A stretch of 64,000 nt of DNA from Podarcis tiliguerta. Its lineage: Eukaryota. Shown piece by piece: positions 1-52,100 of this stretch. The position numbers and the translations under genes are program-made. Each line of letters opens with the position of its first letter. Position 1 is the first letter of the stretch. The DNA is taken from NCBI GenBank assembly GCA_965153285.1, contig OZ229114.1; one strand, written 5' to 3'. The notes beneath the pieces were generated by a model. It searched no databases, was not told where the DNA came from, and saw nothing but the letters and a program-made list of their open reading frames with translations.

Positions 1-2293
1 AACCAATGTCGATGACCTGGTTAATGGGGTAGAAGTGGAAGGATCATTAGGCGCAAGTGATCATGCTCTTCTGAAGTTTACTATACAACGGAAAGGAGCA
101 GCCAAGCATACTAGGACTCAATTTCTTGACTTTAAGAAAGCCGACTTCATAAAACTTAGGGAAGTGCTGGGTGAGATCCCATGGACAGTAATACTAAAAG
201 GAAAGGGAGTTCATGATGGCTGGGAGTTTGTTAAGAGGGAGATAGTAAAAGCACAACTTCAGGCAATACCAATGAGACGGAAACATGGAAGGTGCCTAAA
301 GAAGCCAGGGTGGCTATCTAAAGAACTTCTAACTGAGTTAAGATTAAAAAAGGATGTGTACAAAAAATGGAAAAGGGGGGAAACCACCAAAGAGGAATTC
401 AAACAAATAGCCAGCACGTGTAGACACAAAGTCAGAAAAGCTAAAGCACAGAATGAACTCAGGCTTGCTAGAGAGGTTAAAAGCAACAAAAAAGGCTTTT
501 ATGGGTATGTTCGTAGCAAAAGGAAGAACAACGAAACAGTGGGGTCACTCAGAGGAGAAGATGGTGAAATGCAAACAGGGGACACAGAAAGGGCTGAACT
601 CCTCAGTGCCTTCTTTGCCTCAGTCTTCTCCGATAAAGAAAACAATGCCCGACCTGAAGAATTTGGAGCAAATGATTCAGCAGAGAAAACACAGCCCAGA
701 ATAACTAAGGAGATAGTACAAGAATACTTGGCTAGTTTAGATGTATTCAAGTCTCCAGGGCCAGATGAACTGCATCCGAGAGTATTAAAAGAACTGGCAG
801 ATGTGATCTCAGAACCACTGGCAATCATCTTTGAGAATTCCTGGAGAACAGGCGAAGTCCCGGCAGACTGGAGGAGGGCAAATGTTGTCCCTATTTTCAA
901 AAAGGGGAAAAGAGAGGACCCAAATAATTACCGCCCAGTCAGTCTGACATCAGTACCAGGGAAGATTCTGGAGCAGATCATTAAGCAAACAATCTGTGAG
1001 CACCTAGAAAGGAATGCTGTGATCACCAATAGTCAGCATGGATTTCTGAAAAATAAGTCATGTCAGACGAACCTGATCTCATTTTTTGACAGAATTACAA
1101 GCCTTGTAGATGAAGGGAACGCAGTGGATGTAGTCTACCTTGATTTCAGCAAGGCATTTGACAAGGTGCCCCATGATATTCTTGTAAAGAAGCTGGTAAA
1201 ATGCGGTCTTGACTATGCTACCACTCAGTGGATTTGTAACTGGCTGACTGACCGGACCCAAAGGGTGCTCATCAATGGTTCCTCTTCATCCTGGAGAAGA
1301 GTGACTAGTGGGGTGCCACAGGGTTCTGTCTTGGGCCCGGTCTTATTCAACATCTTTATCAACGACTTGGATGATGGACTCAAGGGCATCCTGATCAAAT
1401 TTGCAGATGACACCAAACTGGGAGGGGTGGCTAACACCCCAGAGGACAGGATCACACTTCAAAACGACCTTGACAGATTAGAGAACTGGGCAAAAACAAA
1501 CAAGATGAATTTTAACAGGGAGAAATGTAAAGTATTGCACTTGGGCAAAAAAAATGAGAGGCACAAATACAAGATGGGTGACACCTGGCTTGAGAGCAGT
1601 ACATGTGAAAAGGATCTAGGAGTCTTGGTTGACCACAAACTTGATATGAGCCAACAGTGTGACGCGGCAGCTAAAAAAGCCAATGCAATTCTGGGCTGCA
1701 TCAATAGGAGTATAGCATCTAGATCAAGGGAAGTTATAGTGCCACTGTATTCTGCTCTGGACAGACCTCACCTGGAGTACTGTGTCCAGTTCTGGGCACC
1801 ACAGTTCAAGAAGGACACTGACAAACTGGAACGTGTCCAGAGGAGGGCAACCAAAATGGTCAAAGGCCTGGAAACGATGCCTTATGAGGAACGGCTAAGG
1901 GAGCTGGGCATGTTTAGCCTGGAGAAGAGGAGGTTAAGGGGTGATATGATAGCCATGTTCAAATATATAAAAGGATGTCACATAGAGGAGGGAGAAAGGT
2001 TGTTTTCTGCTGCTCCAGAGAAGCGGACACGGAGCAATGGATCCAAACTACAAGAAAGAAGATTCCACCTAAACATTAGGAAGAACTTCCTGACAGTAAG
2101 AGCTGTTCGACAGTGGAATTTGCTGCCAAGGAGTGTGGTGGAGTCTTCTTCTTTGGAGGTCTTTAAGCAGAGGCTTGACAACCATATGTCAGGAGTGCTC
2201 TGATGGTGTTTCCTGCTTGGCAGGGGGTTGGACTCGATGGCCCTTGTGGTCTCTTCCAACTCTATGATTCTATGATTCTATGATTCTATGATT
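1..2293 (+). mobile_element. CR1 LINE, 3' ~2.3 kb (continues beyond left window edge), young copy
   Basis: Uninterrupted ORF2, a short 3' UTR (2204-2260) and the diagnostic CR1 terminal octamer repeat (ATTCTATG)n at ~2261-2293. Confidence 0.97.
2..2203 (+). CDS. CR1 ORF2 (C-terminal end of APE endonuclease + reverse transcriptase), 5'-partial
   Basis: The frame is open from base 2 ([21 protein letters not shown]; SDH = APE terminal motif). RT motifs [40 protein letters not shown] and FADD are present, with the CR1 C-terminus RRLRGDMI...HLNIRKNF. Stop codon at 2201-2203. Confidence 0.95.
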
Positions 2294-26258: not shown

Positions 26259-26999
26259 GGACTAAGGAGAAAGTGTGAGGTTTAAAGAAAATGAATGTGT
26301 GTCAAGTAAAAAATTATTCAGAATACAAAGAAATATAAAGCTGAGCACTAAAGTTGATAACAGAAGGACAATGCATAACTTGATGGTGAAAACTCACAGC
26401 CACTGTTCCAAAATGAACAAAACTATACACAGAGACTTCTTTTATTAAAAATGATTCTAAGGCCTTAGAATAAATTAAAATCTAATTGTTTATCAAAAAG
26501 ATGTACTGAACAGAAACTGATTTCCACAGAGAAAGGGTGTTGTTTTCCGGAAGGGAGGGTTTGTATTTGAAACTAATCAACCAAGAGATGCTTCATTACA
26601 AAAGAAAAATGCAGCATAACATCTTACTCTACTGAAAGGAAGAAAAATCAAAACTGTACTTCAAAGAACAACCTGGACATCTTTATGATGCTAATTAAAA
26701 TTGATTTGGCAAATGCAAGAGCATAGTTTGGGAGAATGGACTCTTTGTTCTTTTATTTAGTCTGCCTAACCTCCCAAAGCATTTAATTCTAATTAGATAG
26801 AACCAGAAAACTGAACTGGCAGGAAGAGTCATTGACATTTCATTAATGTCTGGTGTTCCATTAAGCTGTAGGAAAAACCGAAAGTAATAGCACTTAGTCC
26901 ATACCTTCCTTGAACATTTAAATGAGCTATTAAATGCAGTTAAAGTGTTTTTGAAAAGGATGCCAAGTGGTAAAACTTCCAGGATGCTTGATATAAACT

Positions 27000-27000
27000 A

Positions 27001-27033
<33 letters not shown>

Positions 27034-27054
27034 ATATATATATTATATATATAT
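27000..27054. repeat. Compound (TG)n/(TA)n microsatellite
   Basis: (TG)13 followed by imperfect (TA)n; left flank of the inverted repeat. Confidence 0.95.
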
Positions 27055-27134
27055 TTGCTTTCGTAGATTTTCACGGGTACAGGAATGCAGGTTTTGGTGT
27101 CCTCGGGTGTCTTCCCGTGTAAAAGTTGGGGTGT

Positions 27135-27180
27135 CTAGGCGACGTTTCGACGAGGTCTCACTCGTCATCTTCAGGCTGGT
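27135..27180 (-). ncRNA. Minimal hammerhead ribozyme-like motif (copy 2, mirror image)
   Basis: Exact reverse complement of copy 1 (core at 27174->27141). Same strand as the inferred host gene. Confidence 0.6.
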
Positions 27181-27260
27181 GCTTTCGGCTTCTTGTTACT
27201 GGAACAGAGGAACTCAAACACTAAGATCCTGCTCTGTTCCAGTAACAAGAAGCCGAAAGC

Positions 27261-27306
27261 ACCAGCCTGAAGATGACGAGTGAGACCTCGTCGAAACGTC
27301 GCCTAG
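27261..27306 (+). ncRNA. Minimal type I hammerhead ribozyme-like motif (copy 1)
   Basis: CTGAAGA (27267-73), extra T, stem II GACGAG/CTCGTC with a TGAGAC loop, GAAA (27293-96), then C-GTC with putative cleavage after C27300. Stem III is reduced to the palindrome ACGT; stem I is weak (2 clear pairs). Confidence 0.6.
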
Positions 27307-27354
27307 ACACCCCAACTTTTACACGGGAAGACACCCGAGGACACCAAAACCTGC

Positions 27355-27356
<2 letters not shown>

Positions 27357-27402
<46 letters not shown>
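27357..27402. repeat. (TA)n microsatellite
   Basis: About 23 perfect TA units immediately right of the inverted repeat. Confidence 0.95.
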
Positions 27403-27406
<4 letters not shown>

Positions 27407-27998
27407 GACATTTCCCTATACGGATTACAACTGAGCATCACTATCTCAATACCATAATAAACAGGTATTTGTGTCTGAACTCCTCATCTTCAGAACTGTT
27501 TGAATAAAAGCGAAACAGTACTGAAATTTGAAGACCTAAATACTTCATATACTATTGAAAAGGAATCATCATGCAAGACCTAACTGAATTCAACAAGTTT
27601 GCTTCATGTATTTCTAGGCACCTAATCCAAGAGCAAACCTCATGATAGCTCTATATTAAAAACCTAGAATGCATTCTAAATCCTTGCTTATTTCCCCTCA
27701 TCCAAGAGAAGTAATAGTATTATTCCCCAGTTCCCACAACCCTCAAACTCTGCTTTACAGTGCAATTTCTTCTTGTAAGTCTCCACTGTGTTCAGTGTGG
27801 CTTATTTTCATCATTCATCTTGTAGATACTATTTGGGAGATGCTACTGAAAATAAAATGTACTCTGGTACCCATAAGAGAAACAATACAGTACTATTAGT
27901 AATCAATACTAGGGGCTTAGGTATAACAGGGATGCCTCTCAATTAATGGACACATTGTTTGCTCCTGCTACTGGCATGCTGTATTCTGTTTTCTGTAG

Positions 27999-28001
<3 letters not shown>

Positions 28002-28030
<29 letters not shown>
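28002..28030. repeat. (TG)n microsatellite
   Basis: About 14 TG units. Confidence 0.95.
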
Positions 28031-35289: not shown

Positions 35290-37358
35290 GAGGCCCGTGA
35301 CGGAGCCTCAAGAACATCTTATAGGGTTTTTATGAAAACCTATGAGATGGCAGTGAAGGCCGCTAAGAAGTCCTACTTCTCAGCCTCCATTGCATCCGCT
35401 AGCTCTCGCCCGGCGCAATTATTTAGTATAATTAGGTCTTTAACGTCCCTTGAAGGACAGCCAAATTTAAATAACAATTCGACACACAGCTGTGAGGCAT
35501 TTGCGAGCTTTTTTTTGCGGAGAAGGTCCTGTTGCTCCGCCATGACCTCCCTGCCAATTTGGACACAATAAGGGAACTGGAGGCCCCTCGACTGTCCTCG
35601 GGTCCAGTATTGGACCACTTTGACCAGATATCCCCAGCCGATGTGGACAGACTCCTCCGAGCTGGAAAGCCCACCACCTGTCCTCTTGACCCGTGCCCGT
35701 CTTGGCTGATTAGAGTGTGTCCAGACGAGGTGCGGGCCCCCCTGGGTGATATCATCAATTTGTCCCTTGGCACTGGGATATTCCCAGGGGAACTGAAGGA
35801 GGCAGTGGTGCGCCCGCTCTTAAAGAAAACATCATTAGATCCTTTAGATCTATCCAATTACCGCCCAGTTTCTTCCATTCCTGGGTAAGGTGATTGAGAG
35901 AGCAGTTGCTGAACAGCTTGGTAGGTTTCTGGATGAAACATCGGCTCTCGTTCCATTCCAGTCCGGCTTCCGCGCTGGTCATGGGACCGAGACGGCTCTG
36001 GTCGCCCTAACAGATTATCTCCGCAGGCAGCTGGATAGAGGCGGGTCGGGGCTGCTGATTCTTCTAGACCTGTCAGCAGCCTTCGACATGGTTGATCACG
36101 AACTCCTGGACCACCGCCTTGCCGACGTGGGGATCCAGGGCACAGTCCTTCAATGGCTGCGCTCGTTTCTCTCTGGTCAGGGACAGAGGGTGGCGCTTGG
36201 GGGGTTAGGGTTATTGTCATTGCGCCACTCCCTGGTGTGTGGAGTGCCTCAGGGTGCAATTCTCTCTCCGATGCTTTTTAACATCTTTATGCGCCCCCTC
36301 GCCCAGCTTGTCCGGAGTTTTGGGCTGGGTTGCCATCAGTATGCTGATGACACCCAACTCTATCTGTTGATGGATGGCCATCCTGACTCGGCCCCAGATA
36401 CACTGACCAGATGCCTGGAAGCTGTGGCTGGATGGTTTCGTGGGAGCCGGTTGAAGTTAAATCCTTCGAAGACAGAGGTCCTCTGGCTGGGACAGGGCGA
36501 TATGGGATTGAGGGGGCAACTCCCATCTCTTGCGGGGGTGCAACTAGTGCCAGCATCGTCCGTTAAGAGTTTGGGTGTAATCTTCGATACCTCCCTCTCT
36601 ATGGAGGCGCAGATTACAGCTATAACAAAGGCGGCATTTTTTCATCTCCGCCAAGCTAAGCAGCTGGCTCCTTATCTCTCTCGCCCTGACCTAGCCACTG
36701 TGATCCACGTGACGGTCACCTCCAGACTGGATTATTGTAACTCGCTCTACGTGGGGCTGCCCTTGAGACTGACCCAGAAACTCCAGCGGATGCAGAATAC
36801 CGCAGCGAGACTCCTTATGGGGTCGTCGCTGCGAGATCACATTCATCCAGTGCTATACCAGCTGCACTGGCTCCCGGTGGAGTACAGGATCAGGTTTAAG
36901 GTGCTGGTTTTAACCTTTAAAGCCCTATACGGCCTAGGACCCTCGTACCTGCGGGACCGCCTCTCCTGGTATGCCCCACAGAGAAACCTACGGTCTGCAA
37001 ATAAAAACATCCTGAAGGTCCCAGGCCTCAGAGAGGTTAGGCTGGCCTCAACTAGAGCCAGAGCTTTCTCGGCTGTGGCACCAATCTGGTGGAACGCTCT
37101 GTCACAAGAGACTAGGGCCCTGCGGGACTTGACATCTTTCCGCAGGGCCTGTAAGACAGAGCTGTTCCACCAGGCCTTTGGTCAGGGCACAGCCTGACCC
37201 CCTCCTCTGGCAATCTGCACAGGGTCCTGCTTGCTGGTTGCCATCAATTTGTTTTTGATTGATTTTATGGTGAAAAGTTTTTAGACTGTTGGATTGTTTT
37301 TATCGTTGTTAGCCGCCCTGAGCCCAGCTTTGGCTGGGGAGGGCGGGGTATAAATAAA

Positions 37359-44947: not shown

Positions 44948-47799
44948 CAAAATACTAGACTATATCCTAATACAGACAATCAGTCGCCTGGTTCCTATGA
45001 CACAGTAAACCAGGAGACATTCCCTGGATTAAACAGACATTCATTCATGAACCAGGCAATAAGGTTTAAGCTCCTCAAGCTTTGCTCTTTTCTTATTTCC
45101 ATTATTATTTTAAGGATATTATATCCAAAACACCCACTAACCTATATCGTAGGAGTATAGGGGCTTCTTGAAGTATCCTGCAATCAAGTAGGCCTGCGTT
45201 AAGCTAAATATCTACAAACAATATGACTTATCACATTAAAGTAGGGCAAAAAGTCTTGGTAATGTCAGTTTATTAGCCTCATCTAATGGCGACAACTAGC
45301 AACATCTATCACAGCAACTGGTGATCTTCAGGAAAACATTTCTCTACTGTGAACAATTTACTCTAATGTCAGTGAAGTGCCCTGCATACAGATTTATTGC
45401 AAGGCATAAGGAAGAAGGAAGATGCCTGTAGACATATTCTAGTTTATTGATATATAGACTGCAAATTCATTGAAGGAGAGAGGTGTATTTTTGTCCATAT
45501 TACTCAGAGAAGTGTCAAGTACATTGGTGGTGACAAATAAAATATTTGTAATAAATGTATCTGATTATACAGACCGAAATGTGAATATATCTCAAAGTTA
45601 TACTGGCTCCCTTTTGGTTGCAGCTGTTATGGACAGTTTTAGATATTTGTGATCTGCCCTTCACCCAAAAGGTTCTAGGGCACCAGACAACAAAGATTCA
45701 AAGCATGATTCACAAGAACTAAAATTAATATAACCCATGTCATAAAATTCAGAATACCAAAATTTACTTGTAGACACAGAGTTGTTTTTTGGAAAGATAT
45801 TATTGCTCTTTCCAAGGCCACAGAATGAGCAAGCAGATATGCTTGTGATGTCTCCAAGCAAAAGGATTCAGGTATAGAGCATGTATTTTCATACATCCAG
45901 AGTGCTTACACTTTGCAGATAAAGAGGGTAAGTCAAACTACAATTGGGAACAATAGCTAGTTCATGCTACTGTTTGCTTCCTGCATCATCCCGACAGAAT
46001 CACACAAAGTGCAAAACTTTGGCAGGCTAGGTGCTAAGAGGATATTCTCAGAATGGCAGTGGGGCAGAGCACCTTCGTAGCAACTGGTACCATCCCAGAA
46101 CCACAGCAGATAGTGACGTGTTTGTTCATACACAGAACAAACCAAAGAGTGATAGTTCTCTTCAGTAGCCAGTACAGGTAGTGAGCACGTGAGTTGCTCA
46201 GTTACTTATGTCTTCTTTGACACTGAAGCCTCTGTGTTTTTCAGCAGGAAATAAGAAGTGGACTGACTTTCAGCTCTCTCTTGCTAGGTAAACCAAACAG
46301 TAAGTCAGCTGTACAAAGACCTCAAAGTAGGCAACATCCTCCTTCAAGCTACCAAGCAACTCACTTTACATGTGCGACCCCAAACATAGCATATTGGAGG
46401 GGGGAAATCAATTAAACATATCAAGCATTCTTTGCAATCATAGTACCTTTCATCTAGATGTTCTACAGCTGCTCTTTATTAAGAAACCAAAACTTGAAAT
46501 TCTCACACATATTTACACATATGAAAACAAAATCACAATGGGAAAGTAACTGATGGAAACTGCAGCGATTCTCCATATTTAAATACGTCATCAAGAATGA
46601 AAGCGTAATACCTTGTTGACATCTTTTTATGTCTCTATAATGGTCATTAAAAAGTCTTCTTATATCAAGCACTAAACATCATGTAAAATTGTAGAAGTCT
46701 AACAATGCACTTTGCAGCCCCCCAGTGGTAAAGTAGAATTCGTAACTTTGACAGAATTCATATGTACCAGTTTTTATAGAATAGCACTCCTCAAACACCT
46801 ACAGACAAAACTCTCACATTTGCCAGAAGGAAATCATATGGGGGTTATTTTAAAGGAGATAAATAGAGGGACAACTGCCAGCTGCTCTATTTCTGTCCAT
46901 TGCTTGTAATCTATATTGCAATCAAACTGCATGCAGAACACAAAGATTATAGTAATTGGGCTGATGACCTCAGTGCCTTGTGCTCAAATAATCTATATTT
47001 CTGCTGGTTCTCAGAGTATAGTCCTCCAAGTTCCTGTGAATTAATGTTAATGTTTTGTCCTAAGCATACACAAACAGCAATGAGCAAACTTTCAAATCAT
47101 AACTATGATATTTACTGTCTTTAAGAAACAGTGACATTTTCAAAGCAGTGCTTAGTAAAGTTCTCACCACTTCTGTTTAACACTGAACAGTTGACATCCT
47201 AGAGAAAGATTCACAGCAGAAACGCAAAACAGAGAAAGGGAAATAATTTACTTTTTGAGATGCAAAGTGAACCACAGATGTCACCAGTAAAACTAGTTGG
47301 GTTAAAAACAGAAATTACTAATGCATACTATCAAAATAAATCTATGAATAACATGTTTCATCATAGAGGGAATACCAAAAGCCACCTGGGGTTATCTAAG
47401 CAGTTTAATGCTACAGAGACTATTATTATTTTCCCTGCCAAGTTTTCCTTTCTCTCTGACAACATTGCTTTCCATTGAAGCAACACCATATCAAGGGTGC
47501 AAAGTCTTAAATGTGTTTCATACTGAACCAAGGAGGAGTATTGCAAAGTGGAATGAATGGAAACTCCAGGGCCAAGTGGGCTCCCCCAGCTAAAATGAAA
47601 AACCAGTATTTTCTGTGTTAGGCAGGCTAAGTCAATGTTTTGGTGTCTTCAACTTTGCTGATGCAAGAACCGAAATACCAAGTTTCAGTGTGTACTACTG
47701 TACACACAACCGATCTTTCCCACCGATTCGAATACCCCCTTCAAATGAGCCCTTTGGCCAGAGGTCCACGCTCCTTTGTAGATCTGGAGCTCCATAAGG

Positions 47800-49150
47800 C
47801 GAATAAACATTCCGCCCCAGTGTCGCCTCCTCATTTGCAGCCACTGGCTGCCTTCCGCTCAGCCAAGCAATCCGTTTAAGCCCCGCCAGGGTCAGAGCGC
47901 CCGTCTGCGAAGAGCGATGCGTTCGAGGCACTTCACCTTCCCAGAGACTTCGCTCCTGGCCCAATCGCGGCAGAGCCAGCACGCCTGCCCAATTGCCCCC
48001 AACTCCAGCGGCTTCCCCTCGCCCTTCGCCTCACGACGCCTCAAACTTTCCCCGGCTCTTCTTTCCCTCAGGGATGCGTAACGGTGAGGGAGTCCCTCTT
48101 CCTCGCCGCCTCCCACCCCACCCTCTCTCTCCGAGGCAAGCGAGCTTCCTCGTCTCCACCTGCCGTTTCCAGGTGCAGCCAACGAAGCTTCCCTCACCAA
48201 CGGCAGCCCAAGCGAAGGAAACTCCTCCGGCGCGCCGCCACAGCCTCGTCAAGCGCAACAAGCCCGCCAGACACAACAAACGCTGCCGCCGGCGCCCTCG
48301 GAATCGCCCCGGGAAGGAAGCGCGGGCGACGAGGCGGCGCCCCTCACACCTGCGCGCAGCCTGGCATTGCTGGGAAGGAGGCGGCGAGGCGAGGAGGGAG
48401 GCAGGGAAACTTCACTTACCTTTGGCGGCGAGGAGACTGGCGACCCCGCACAGGAGCAGCGCCCACTCCCAGCACTGCCTCATCCTCTCGGCGACCCGGT
48501 CGAGCAGGACGCGCTTGCTTCTCCTCTTCCTCTTCCTCGGCTTTTATCACAGCCGTCTCCCTTCGTCGAGGCGGAGGAGGCTCCGGGCTGCGCCGCGTGG
48601 TCCCTCAGACCGCTCGCGTCGCTGGGCTGTGGCAGCGGAGGGAAAGGGAAGCGAGGAGAAGCTGGAGCAGCCGCGGCGTCTGCTAGAGGAGGATGACGGC
48701 TACTGCTCAGTCATTCGCAGGCTTTACTGCCAGGACCAAAGCAGCTCTCCGGCTTTCAGCGCGGGACTGCTGCAACGTCACGGGGAGGAGAGGCGTGAAT
48801 ATTCATGAGGAGGAGGGGCGGGGCGCGGGGGGGGGGGGAGAGAGAAGAGACGCGGGTGGAAGGAGGTTCGGCGCGCGCAAACTACGGCGAAGAAAAGCAC
48901 GCTTGCAGAAGGCTGCCACTTTCATTCCGCAGGAATAGCCTCAGAGTTGGGGGCTTCTGCCTTCTCTGGATGTTGCAGCCAGAAGGATCGGGTGCTGGCT
49001 GCCCCGGGCGAAGGTGTGGGCAGGCACCTCTTCCTGCTGCGCACCTACCTGCCTGCCTGCTGTCTCGGGTTGGTGCAGCGCGGAAGGTTGGCTACAGAGC
49101 AGCCACTTCATCCTCTCACTTGCTCACCTGAGTTCGCGCTCTCTCTCTTG
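47800..49150. promoter_or_regulatory. CpG island / promoter of minus-strand gene
   Basis: Abrupt GC- and CpG-rich island in otherwise CpG-poor DNA. GC box GGGGCGGGGC (~48815-48824), half-CRE ACGTCA (~48775), GCGCGCGCA (~48871). Contains the first exon and splice donor. Confidence 0.93.
48420..48483 (-). CDS. First coding exon (64 nt, phase-1) encoding a signal peptide of a secreted or type I membrane protein: MRQCWEWALLLCGVASLLAAK|G
   Basis: ATG at 48483-48481 with A at -3. Basic N-terminus plus hydrophobic core. Consensus donor AAG|GTAAGT at 48420/48419, inside the CpG island. Gene not identified; CD99L2/CD99-like is a tentative guess from recalled signal peptides. Confidence 0.82.
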
Positions 49151-52100
49151 GAGGAGAAGGCTGCAGCTCAGCTAGTCAAATCCCAGTGGCTGCTCCTTGC
49201 ACAATCTCGCACCCTTCTCGGCATTAATGGTTGCCACTGCCTTTGATTCCCTCCCTCCCTCCCTCTGAAATTAGGCTCTTGCTGCTCATATGTCCCCTTT
49301 CTTACGGAAGAGCAATAGAAAGGATGGGGCCCAGTTATGCAGAGGAAATGGGCAAAAAAAGAGGCAGGGACTGCCTGCTCACTCGCCCGCTCTCTCTGAA
49401 CAGCATGTTGGCGAGGGATTGGGTTTTCACTGGGCTCACTCTCCACTGCTGTGCCACCCAACAGGAGCGCACAGGTGGGCAGATGAAGTTGAGGTGACTG
49501 CTTTTTCCATGACCAGCCCCTAAGCAACCTCTTTACTGAGTATCCATCCAGATTTGTTTGCCCAAAGCTTACACAAGAGGCTAGACCATGGCTGCAGGGA
49601 TGCTATAGGACAATAAACATTTATCCTGATTTACTTGCACTGTGTTTGTATTTCATGTTACCCATTTGTTCACCCCACACTTATCATTGCATTCCTGTGT
49701 CACTTTCCTGGCTGCAAAAAGTCTTTTTTTTTTTTAAGTGGGTTTGTTGCAATAGGGTGGCAGAGCAGTTTAATCACATAAATTGTGGAAACCTAAATTA
49801 CCAGTATACACTTGAATCCCTCCTGCAAAATACTGACAGACTGGAGGTGACCCTGTGTGATGTAATGCCCAGAGAGGGAAGGTGGACAAGTGGACAGAAG
49901 CATCTGCTTGTGCTGACTCTTAAGGTTTTCTGCTGTTACCGAGAAAGCATGAGAGAGATGAGTTAACTACCCTGTGGTTTTTTGTGGGTGGGTGGTTGGT
50001 GGTGGTTTTTTTTTTTGTTTGTTTGTTTTTTGCACATTCCATTCCCACCCACCCCCAAGAGCAGGAGGTGTTGCCAATGGTTCTAGGGTGCTCCCTAGCT
50101 GGTGACATCCCTCCTTATCCACTTTCTGCTGCAGGGCAGAAGAAGGGATGCCTGTTATTTGCTATTTGACCACCTTCACTAACCAGTAACAGTGCTAAGT
50201 GGCTGTTTGACTTTCAAAATAAAAGTGGCATTATTAAACACACTTTAAAGAAAACAAAAATATGCTTAATTTAATGTAGGTGCTTAACTTAATGTAGGAG
50301 TCACCAATGTGATACCTATGGGTGCAGTGATGTCCCTGAAATCTTCCCCTGGTGCCCATGAAACCTCTAAGCCTTCCATTCACGCAACCCTTGGTCATGA
50401 GGTGTTCCTTGATCTCTTTTGAAAAGTACATAGAGTTGAAGGAGGGATTTAGAATAAGAATTCTTGTTCCCACTTCCCCTTTCAGTTCTATGCGCTTTTC
50501 AAGATTCCAGTTAATTCTATTGGATATGACCTAAATCCTTTGGGTTTTTTTGCTTAAGTGCAGGTGTACTTTCTGTCTGTCTTGGGGGGGGGGGGATTGG
50601 GGGATGGGAGAGACATGACCCAAAGGGGTGGAACTCACAGCACTCACTCAAAAATCGAAATGTGCACATGGACTTAAAAAGGCTGGCAACTGTAGTTTGT
50701 CCAGATGGTGTGGAGAGCAAAGTGCCAAACATTCACAATCTATTCCTCCAGAACAATGGAACAGGGATATTTCAAGCTTCTTTTGTGTGTTCTTCATACT
50801 TTACACATATGAAATAGAAGTAGAACTTCCATGGGAACTGGTTCACATATGTTTGTACATATAACCTGATAACTCAACACTTGGTACAGCGTGATATAGT
50901 AGAGATCTTTATGATCTCATACGCGCATGAGGATACATTCACATGTGTGTAGAATTTGCCTCATTACTAATTTTCTTTCACTCCCTTCTGAAGCACTGAG
51001 GAACTGGGGCAAATTGTGCATATACTTTTCACATATGAATGCCTGCATAATGAAGGAATGGATGCCTGCACAAGAGGAAACAGGATTACACCCACAAGCC
51101 CTGCCCCATAATCAGTGCTGGTGTGAAATAAATTATGCAGTAGCAGGCATAATCCCCCTTTCCCACTGCATGAACATGTGATGACCATTCCTGATTGGGG
51201 GAAAGCTGGGCAAATCATATCCCATTTATATTGTGCATGCAACAGTTATGAACATTCCTAGGTTTACCAGCCTTTGGTTTAACCCTATTTAGAACAGAAA
51301 CAGGTTTTCTTTTTAACTTGAGAACAGCTGAGATATGATTTTGATTTTTGCGTGGTCTGTGTTTTCCTTGAATATAATTGTTAATTATTACATTTATACC
51401 TTGCCTATTATCTGTTATGTTATTCAAGGCAGCTTATATGATTCTCCCAGACTGTCTCCTATCCAGGCAGACTCCGGCCTCTTTAGCTTCACAGGGTTAT
51501 TGCATCATGTGCCCTCAGGCCATGCCCTGGGAATCATTTTGCTTCTTTTTTGCCACAAATACAGTGGTCCCAGCCACTGTGTTTTCGAATTTGCAAAACA
51601 AGGGTCCATACATGTTCAGGATTGCTTCACAATTAAAGATATAACTTCGTTCATTGTGTTAAGTGATGGGAGTGTCACTCCTGCTTAGGAACATAAGAAG
51701 TATCTTTCCAGATGGAGCCAGTCCACTCTTTGCATGAGTTCCAGCAACCAGCCCTAGCTGGTCACTCAGAAATTGATCACTGGTTCATTAGTGCACCATT
51801 GGCAGATGTCTTCAGTCCACCATCCCTGTTCTAAAGCCCAGCCTTTCTGAGCATGTGCAGAATGCCTTTCTTCACTACTGTGCCTACCCTCAGTGACTAC
51901 CCTTTAGCTCTCTCACCACTCCTGGGAAGGAGTCTTTCAGTGTCTTCACACCATTCCATTTGTCCTCAAGGATAAAGCATTTCTTGAAACCCTGTCTTGA
52001 AACTCCCTGCTCAGAGAAATATGTGCCATCATGCCTGTACCAACGAACTATGTGCACTATGCATTTATGATAAATTACTGCTCCTGCTTGCTGACTAAAC

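Follow-up and report, generated by a model that had tools for sequence, protein, structure and literature searches.

The fold-back at 27055-27357 of the window (the whole stretch of lizard DNA that was analyzed, 64 kb in length) is in all likelihood a very young, dead-on-arrival insertion of a truncated Penelope-like element (PLE). The family to which it would belong is an abundant one of the Penelope/Poseidon type, related to Poseidon_Ac but different from it. The insertion consists of two partial copies placed head to head, and each of them carries a minimal hammerhead motif. A fold-back with mirror-image hammerheads is an arrangement already present in the literature, and nothing new is added to it here. 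The sequence-only reading had proposed a recent PLE-derived insertion with inverted partial copies. This proposal agrees with the published features of PLEs, as the motif, the ORF start, the termini, the tail, the (TA)n target, and the truncated twin all match them. Dead PLE fragments number in the thousands in a lizard genome, and this one is of little import alone. It provides a textbook link between the genomic anatomy of PLEs (inverted twin, one-sided tail, and (TA)n target) and the biochemistry in vitro of Poseidon_Ac (PAc), a PLE of the Penelope/Poseidon clade from Anolis carolinensis (Frangieh et al. 2024, PMC11167929).

Anatomy of the Fold-Back

Exact arms around a short spacer had been claimed from the sequence, and both the repeat search and the direct string test bear this out. 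The arms, 27084-27209 and 27232-27357, are 126 nt long each and 100% reverse-complementary, and the gap between them is 22 nt (27210-27231). The limits of the whole unit are 27055-27357 (303 nt). The 29 extra nucleotides at 27055-27083, a tail whose boundary with the (TA)n is ambiguous by 1-5 nt, belong to the left copy and are absent from the right copy. In the sense direction, the minus-strand copy runs from 27209 to 27055 (155 nt), and the plus-strand copy runs from the start of the spacer at 27210 to 27357 (148 nt). The features of the locus are as follows:

27001-27054, no strand: left target flank, (TG)13.5 and then an imperfect (TA)n microsatellite
27055-27083, minus strand: 29-nt tail found in the minus-strand copy only, ORF nucleotides +86 to +114
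27055-27168, minus strand: PLE ORF start, 38 open codons from the ATG at 27168-27166
27084-27209, minus strand: left arm, the PLE copy on the minus strand (antisense as read on the plus strand), spanning element positions -41 to +85 counted from the ORF ATG
27141-27174, minus strand: minimal hammerhead motif in the minus-strand copy, CUGAAGA-U-helix II of 6 bp-GAAAC-GUC
27208-27209, no strand: AG dinucleotide, 2-nt microhomology at the junction of the copies
27210-27231, plus strand: spacer, belonging to the plus-strand copy (element positions -63 to -42)
27232-27357, plus strand: right arm, the PLE copy on the plus strand from element position -41 to +85, without the tail
27267-27300, plus strand: minimal hammerhead motif in the plus-strand copy, with the cut predicted after C27300
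about 27357/27358 to 27403/27404, no strand: right target flank, (TA)23.5

The unit had been labeled an inverted pLTR, which is slightly loose: the label is right for the last 41-65 nt of the pLTR, but the rest of each arm is the first 85-114 nt of the ORF. There is no reverse transcriptase (RT) or GIY-YIG sequence in the fragment, which holds the first 38 ORF codons only; these 38 codons are open and represent the start of the PLE ORF.

PLE insertions are known to be highly 5'-truncated, often with an inverted 5'-truncated copy alongside, to carry a 30-40-bp tail, frequently at one end only, and to be biased towards microsatellites, with (TA)n being the target of Naiads (Craig et al. 2021). 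The locus shows the same traits. Its head-to-head inverted copies are 5'-truncated at -41 and about -65, and the 29-nt tail is present on the left only. The outer ends at +114 and +85 match two RT start sites: the tail ends at the counterpart of the downstream internal RT start site of Poseidon_Ac, and the right arm ends where the upstream one is expected. The hammerhead motif lies at the pLTR-ORF junction, and the target is a (TA)n microsatellite of the kind that also flanks paralogous copies. The insertion sits within the microsatellite, and no target-site duplication can be read there. The (TA)23.5 of the right flank is the sole (TA)n tract of at least 20 nt in the 64-kb window.

A 221-nt contig of reads from X16 reads continuously through upstream sequence, the AG dinucleotide, the spacer, the arm, and the tail. 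Therefore, the spacer is the family's own sequence and not foreign filler. Both copies can accommodate the AG at 27208-27209, which is thus a 2-nt microhomology at their junction. In the DNA runs, the only departure of the window from the prevalent family letter is at 27223 in the spacer, where the window has A and most family copies have G.

No further copies of the unit were found by BLASTN against the window, and there is no PLE RT ORF among the window ORFs of at least 110 aa. Several other features of the window can be noted. A second microsatellite, (TG)14.5 at 28002-28030, lies 1 kb downstream of the insertion and resembles 27001-27027. An uninterrupted ORF of 722 aa at 35-2203 (plus strand) encodes a LINE reverse transcriptase; by eye, it is CR1-like, judging by the FADDTKL motif and the CR1-type C-terminus, and it is possibly young. 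Adjacent ORFs of 118 and 435 aa at 35532-37197 (plus strand) encode another LINE reverse transcriptase, L2-like by eye (YADDTQL), and the split of the ORF suggests a frameshift or a stop. About 20 kb downstream of the insertion, a CpG island at 47751-49250 (GC 0.61-0.67, CpG observed/expected 0.63-0.92) is probably the promoter or first exon of a host gene, and the long GC-rich ORFs located there are probably compositional.

Hammerhead Motifs

The hammerhead motif reported in each arm by the sequence-only reading was found at both sites. It has the form CTGAAGA-T-GACGAG-TGAGAC-CTCGTC-GAAAC-GTC and occupies 27267-27300 on the plus strand and 27174-27141 on the minus strand; the predicted cut in the minus-strand copy is after the complement of G27141. 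The search used a minimal-hammerhead descriptor modeled on the published one: a CUGANGA box, 0-1 extra nt, a helix II with 4 bp or more and G10.1-C11.1 as its closing pair, GAAA, a palindromic stretch of 0-4 nt, and UH. In both strands of the 64-kb window, this descriptor matches these two sites only. It had no matches in 200 randomized windows (first-order Markov, preserving dinucleotide frequencies), and the possibility of a chance motif was rejected on these grounds.

Both arms contain the catalytic boxes C3-U4-G5-A6-N7-G8-A9 (CUGAAGA) and G12-A13-A14 (GAAA). Helix II comprises 6 bp (GACGAG/CUCGUC) with a 6-nt loop and the closing pair G10.1-C11.1, and an unpaired U lies between A9 and G10.1. 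The pair A15.1-U16.1, the palindromic 15.2-16.2 positions, and a cleavable H17 are present in GAA-ACGU-C, where the ACGU palindrome can pair in trans. Helix I has two clear pairs only, G1.1-C2.1 and C1.2-G2.2, as had been noted from the sequence before. The ATG of the ORF is located inside the motif, at 27273 on the plus strand and 27168 on the minus strand, and overlaps A9, the extra U, and G10.1; the predicted cut is 25 nt after the ATG.

A scan with Rfam hammerhead models had been suggested as a check of the motif. None of the families Hammerhead_1, Hammerhead_3, Hammerhead_II, HH9, and HH10 gave a match at the gathering score, and none matched at E<=10 either, with the full hairpin or with a single arm. 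This may be explained by a motif without a closed helix III and with a helix I of 2 bp. Sub-threshold matches to Rfam miRNA and SRP families were rejected as generic hairpin look-alikes; they are far under the threshold, and the miRNA ones occur on both strands. Scans of metagenome and viral contig collections for the exact 34-nt motif returned no loci.

The motifs are probably non-functional at this locus. Each transcript would contain one sense motif, whereas a ribozyme of this type needs a second copy or the protein of the element to form helix III; in particular, the PAc hammerhead cleaves only with the protein present (PMC11167929). Moreover, in both possible transcripts the perfect antisense arm is transcribed before the ribozyme arm, and the 126-bp hairpin is approximately ten times more stable than any ribozyme fold. 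The folding energy of the whole unit is -269 and -273 kcal/mol, compared with -26 kcal/mol for one copy. Masking of the ribozyme by its own antisense, one of the suggestions made from the sequence, is consistent with these energies and with the signature of double-stranded RNA (dsRNA) editing in the RNA of the family. The other suggestion, an escape by co-transcriptional folding, is unlikely given the order in which the arms are transcribed. A dimer forced into the ribozyme fold has -22.1 kcal/mol, and the minimum free energy of the unconstrained dimer is -29.4 kcal/mol, so the dimer ribozyme is not the preferred fold. The lower stability of the forced dimer, together with the hairpin, the antisense-first order, and the single sense motif, makes self-cleavage at the locus unlikely. 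In the RNA run, where the reads are of family level, no pile-up of read ends was observed at 27300/27301.

ORF Start and Its Relatives

The frame from the ATG is open to the end of each copy. The plus-strand copy ends 85 nt into the ORF, and the minus-strand copy ends 114 nt in, i.e., after 38 codons. A phmmer search with the 38-aa query against 1.84 billion representatives revealed one real relative, P0002 (189 aa), which originates from a single Logan contig of 2989 nt. Another match, P0001, was rejected as repetitive and spurious. The 38-aa ORF start is 68% identical to P0002 over residues 1-38 (BLASTP E 2e-14). In the follow-up with P0002, the word search returned P0002 alone, the protein atlas gave no usable match, and a PDB sequence search yielded nothing relevant.

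The arms and P0002 were compared with Poseidon_Ac by eye, using the consensus printed in File S1 of the paper. Residues 33-81 of P0002 align with residues 34-82 of PAc without gaps, with 26 of 49 identities (about 53%) as aligned by eye, and the residues common to both proteins include LYGE..FQ.TR..EKL, LC...FL..CRD...IP, and KTP by the same alignment. The predicted protein P0002 is probably the N-terminal part of the ORF of a PLE from a related family. The short ORF start at the locus is thus homologous, via P0002, to an N-terminus of the PLE type, which favors the PLE origin claimed earlier. On the by-eye alignment, nucleotide +114 of the ORF corresponds to PAc nucleotides 115-117, inside the published start site at 111-118.

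Abundance of the Family, Other Copies, and the Empty Site

The reads show a very abundant family: the word depth of the flanks is about 15-16 in the DNA runs X1 and X2, and the summed depth of the element is 25,000-300,000. The depth in reads rises toward the 3' end of the element, which fits 5' truncation. Loose ends of reads indicate that many paralogous copies abut (TA)n at differing truncation points, and loose ends in X16 and X23 show that the family extends upstream into further unique sequence. Two other fold-back joints are present in X1, 27110>27316 (depth 45) and 27175>27267 (depth 14). Head-to-head copies that turn at different points thus recur in the genome. The contigs of X1 break in the microsatellites, and no independent read among them bridges the flanks into the arms.

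The flanks in X2, a sample with another species label, are approximately 0.9% divergent. A 1198-nt contig from X2 covers 26700-26989 and 27413-27799 with 35 nt between these segments, whereas 423 nt separate them in the window. This contig is an empty-site allele: it lacks the 303-bp insertion and has a shorter microsatellite. Consequently, the insertion is young and either lineage-specific or polymorphic, and a young age agrees with the perfect identity of the arms and the single off-family position at 27223. The apparent absence from another sample makes the insertion a possible presence/absence marker.

RNA Reads and Editing

The RNA depth on the flanks is zero in the RNA run X23. The X23 reads that match the unit are of family level and come from other family copies in another sample, not from this locus. 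Over 27070-27330, these reads contain T>C changes only when the first mate is on the plus strand and A>G changes only when it is on the minus strand. Such strand-specific changes were found at more than 30 sites, and the DNA contigs lack them. By the usual library convention, they are consistent with A-to-G changes on RNA transcribed in both directions, i.e., with the ADAR hyper-editing signature of dsRNA.

A lizard Penelope element has been found to be massively edited, at more than 40,000 sites (Porath et al. 2017, PMC5625713). Penelope elements are also top editing targets in Xenopus tropicalis. As in the hyper-edited inverted repeats of Porath et al., the family RNA here shows strand-consistent A-to-G clusters; the evidence in this case is at the family level, from another sample and not from this locus. 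A transcript of the present unit, if made, would be expected to form a long dsRNA hairpin and to serve as an ADAR substrate. The locus is an example of why PLE fold-backs contribute so heavily to the edited dsRNA of lizards.

Possible Mechanism of Insertion

The PAc enzyme cuts AT-rich DNA and extends both strands; it begins reverse transcription at either of two internal sites, 111-118 nt into the ORF, which are separated by the optional 30-40-bp tail (PMC11167929). The structure of the locus would most likely result from a similar sequence of events. The GIY-YIG endonuclease would nick both strands of the (TA)n microsatellite. The left top-strand 3'-OH would prime cDNA synthesis at about +114, which includes the tail, and this synthesis would stop at -41; the right bottom-strand 3'-OH would prime cDNA at +85, without the tail, and here synthesis would stop at about -65. 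The 3' ends of the cDNAs would then anneal via the 2-nt AG/CT microhomology, and each would be extended on the other, giving the head-to-head fold-back. Twin priming with the AG/CT join would explain the fold-back, the sense orientation of the spacer, and the one-sided tail. The hammerhead motifs would be a mere part of the copied pLTR-ORF junction.

Snap-back self-priming of a single cDNA was also considered and rejected. It predicts identical outer ends, yet the tail is present on one arm only; the model is also disfavored by the spacer, which is the sense sequence of the right copy.

There is an even chance, in our estimation, that the locus preserves a clean in vivo trace of a PLE performing double-strand ("twin") target-primed reverse transcription, with one start at +114 with the tail, the other at +85 without it, and a 2-nt microhomology join. 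If this is true, asymmetric twins collected genome-wide could be used to test in vivo the PAc model with two start sites and both strands, which so far rests on in vitro data. Twin priming would also explain the fact that the tail of PLEs is usually found at one end only.

Alternative Explanations

The sequence-only reading had left room for a non-autonomous ribozyme-bearing family, i.e., an animal non-LTR retrozyme or a SINE-like derivative of PLE pLTRs in place of a truncated autonomous PLE. This alternative now appears very unlikely. Animal non-LTR retrozymes form head-to-tail tandems of short units with a type I hammerhead in each; such tandems are absent, and no direct repeat of the unit occurs in the window. 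The arms are colinear from the pLTR to the PLE ORF start, which is open in all 38 codons and matches P0002, and the unit ends at the RT start-site positions of an autonomous element. The depth gradient rising to the 3' end fits 5' truncation, and the loose ends in X16 and X23 continue upstream into unique sequence. In favor of a retrozyme, the piece is extremely abundant in reads, and metagenome and viral scans and the word search yielded no full-length parent. A preprint of 2026 argues that animal retrozymes derive from PLE pLTRs.

An assembly artifact, in which the fold-back or the whole insertion arose from a microsatellite gap bridged via a repeat copy or from a chimeric palindromic read, seems highly improbable. 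Tandem and inverted PLE structures do trouble assemblies (Craig et al. 2021), no X1 contig spans the flanks into the arms, and X2 has the site without the insertion. Nevertheless, the arms end at two distinct natural termini, with and without the tail, which a palindrome artifact would not produce. In addition, the spacer is genuine family sequence joined through a 2-nt microhomology, independent short-read contigs contain further fold-back junctions that turn at other points, and the flanks are single-copy and colinear. Finally, it is very unlikely that the hairpin has been co-opted by the host, e.g., to supply small RNAs or to act as a regulated self-cleaving switch. Were it transcribed, the perfect 126-bp hairpin would serve as a substrate for Dicer or ADAR, and there are the sub-threshold Rfam matches to miRNA hairpins, but these matches lie far below the gathering scores and on both strands, as for any long hairpin. 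The absence of the insertion from another sample means that it is not conserved, the flanks have zero RNA depth in X23, and the cut site is not marked by an excess of read ends; for PAc, RNA-seq reads ending at the cut were likewise absent (PMC11167929). A truncated, dead-on-arrival PLE insertion remains the preferred explanation of the unit.

Comparison with Known Systems

Minimal hammerheads were defined in the flanking repeats of PLEs by Cervera and de la Pena (2014, PMC4209133). They have a long helix II and a short helix I, a conserved G10.1-C11.1 pair, an unpaired nucleotide between A9 and G10.1, and palindromic 15.2-16.2 positions implying action as a dimer; their activity in vitro is very low, and dual motifs occur on opposite strands 100-700 bp apart. 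The motifs described here share with those of metazoan PLEs all core nucleotides, the unpaired nucleotide between A9 and G10.1, the G10.1-C11.1 pair, the long helix II, the palindromic 15.2-16.2 positions, and the presence of twin opposite-strand motifs within 100-700 bp. In contrast, helix I, which usually has 4-5 bp, is shorter here and comes close to that of the Drosophila virilis variant, which has 2 bp.

The proposed mechanism also has a counterpart outside PLEs. Twin priming by L1, which leads to inversion with 5' truncation in LINE-1 insertions, was reportedly described by Ostertag and Kazazian in 2001. In both cases, two cDNAs would be primed from both target strands and joined by microhomology to give an inverted 5'-truncated product. 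Unlike in L1, where a poly(A) tail or an internal annealing site is used, both primings here would start at internal RNA sites. The copies overlap almost fully and form a fold-back, whereas an inversion/deletion results in L1, and the enzyme would be a PLE RT with a GIY-YIG endonuclease.

One of the closest known systems is PAc. The Poseidon_Ac consensus (Repbase; PMC11167929, File S1) has the same CTGAGGATG...GAAACGTC layout as the locus, and it reads ...CTGAGG-ATG-...-GAAACGTC. In PAc, the ORF has its start codon where helix II begins, and the cut follows 26 nt downstream (PMC11167929). Similarly, the hammerhead of the present family extends across the pLTR-ORF junction and has the ATG at the helix II base, so that the cut lies about 25-26 nt downstream in both elements. 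They also share the minimal helix III GAAAC-GUC, an AT-rich target, extension of both DNA strands (conditional here on the mechanism proposed above), copies that terminate about 85 and 114 nt after the ORF start, where the interval between the two ends forms a tail of about 30 nt, and a homologous ORF N-terminus, the latter via P0002 (26/49 identities by eye). As for the differences, the RT/EN body is absent from the copy studied here. Helix II is GCCUGC/GUGGGC in PAc and GACGAG/CUCGUC here; by eye, four of the six pairs are different, and pairing is retained in all six. Helix I has two clear pairs here and three in PAc (by eye). Loop 2 is one nucleotide shorter here than in PAc, and the ORF therefore reads the GAAAC box in another frame. 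The differences in helix II and loop 2 suggest that the locus represents a separate PLE family from PAc that is built to the same design.
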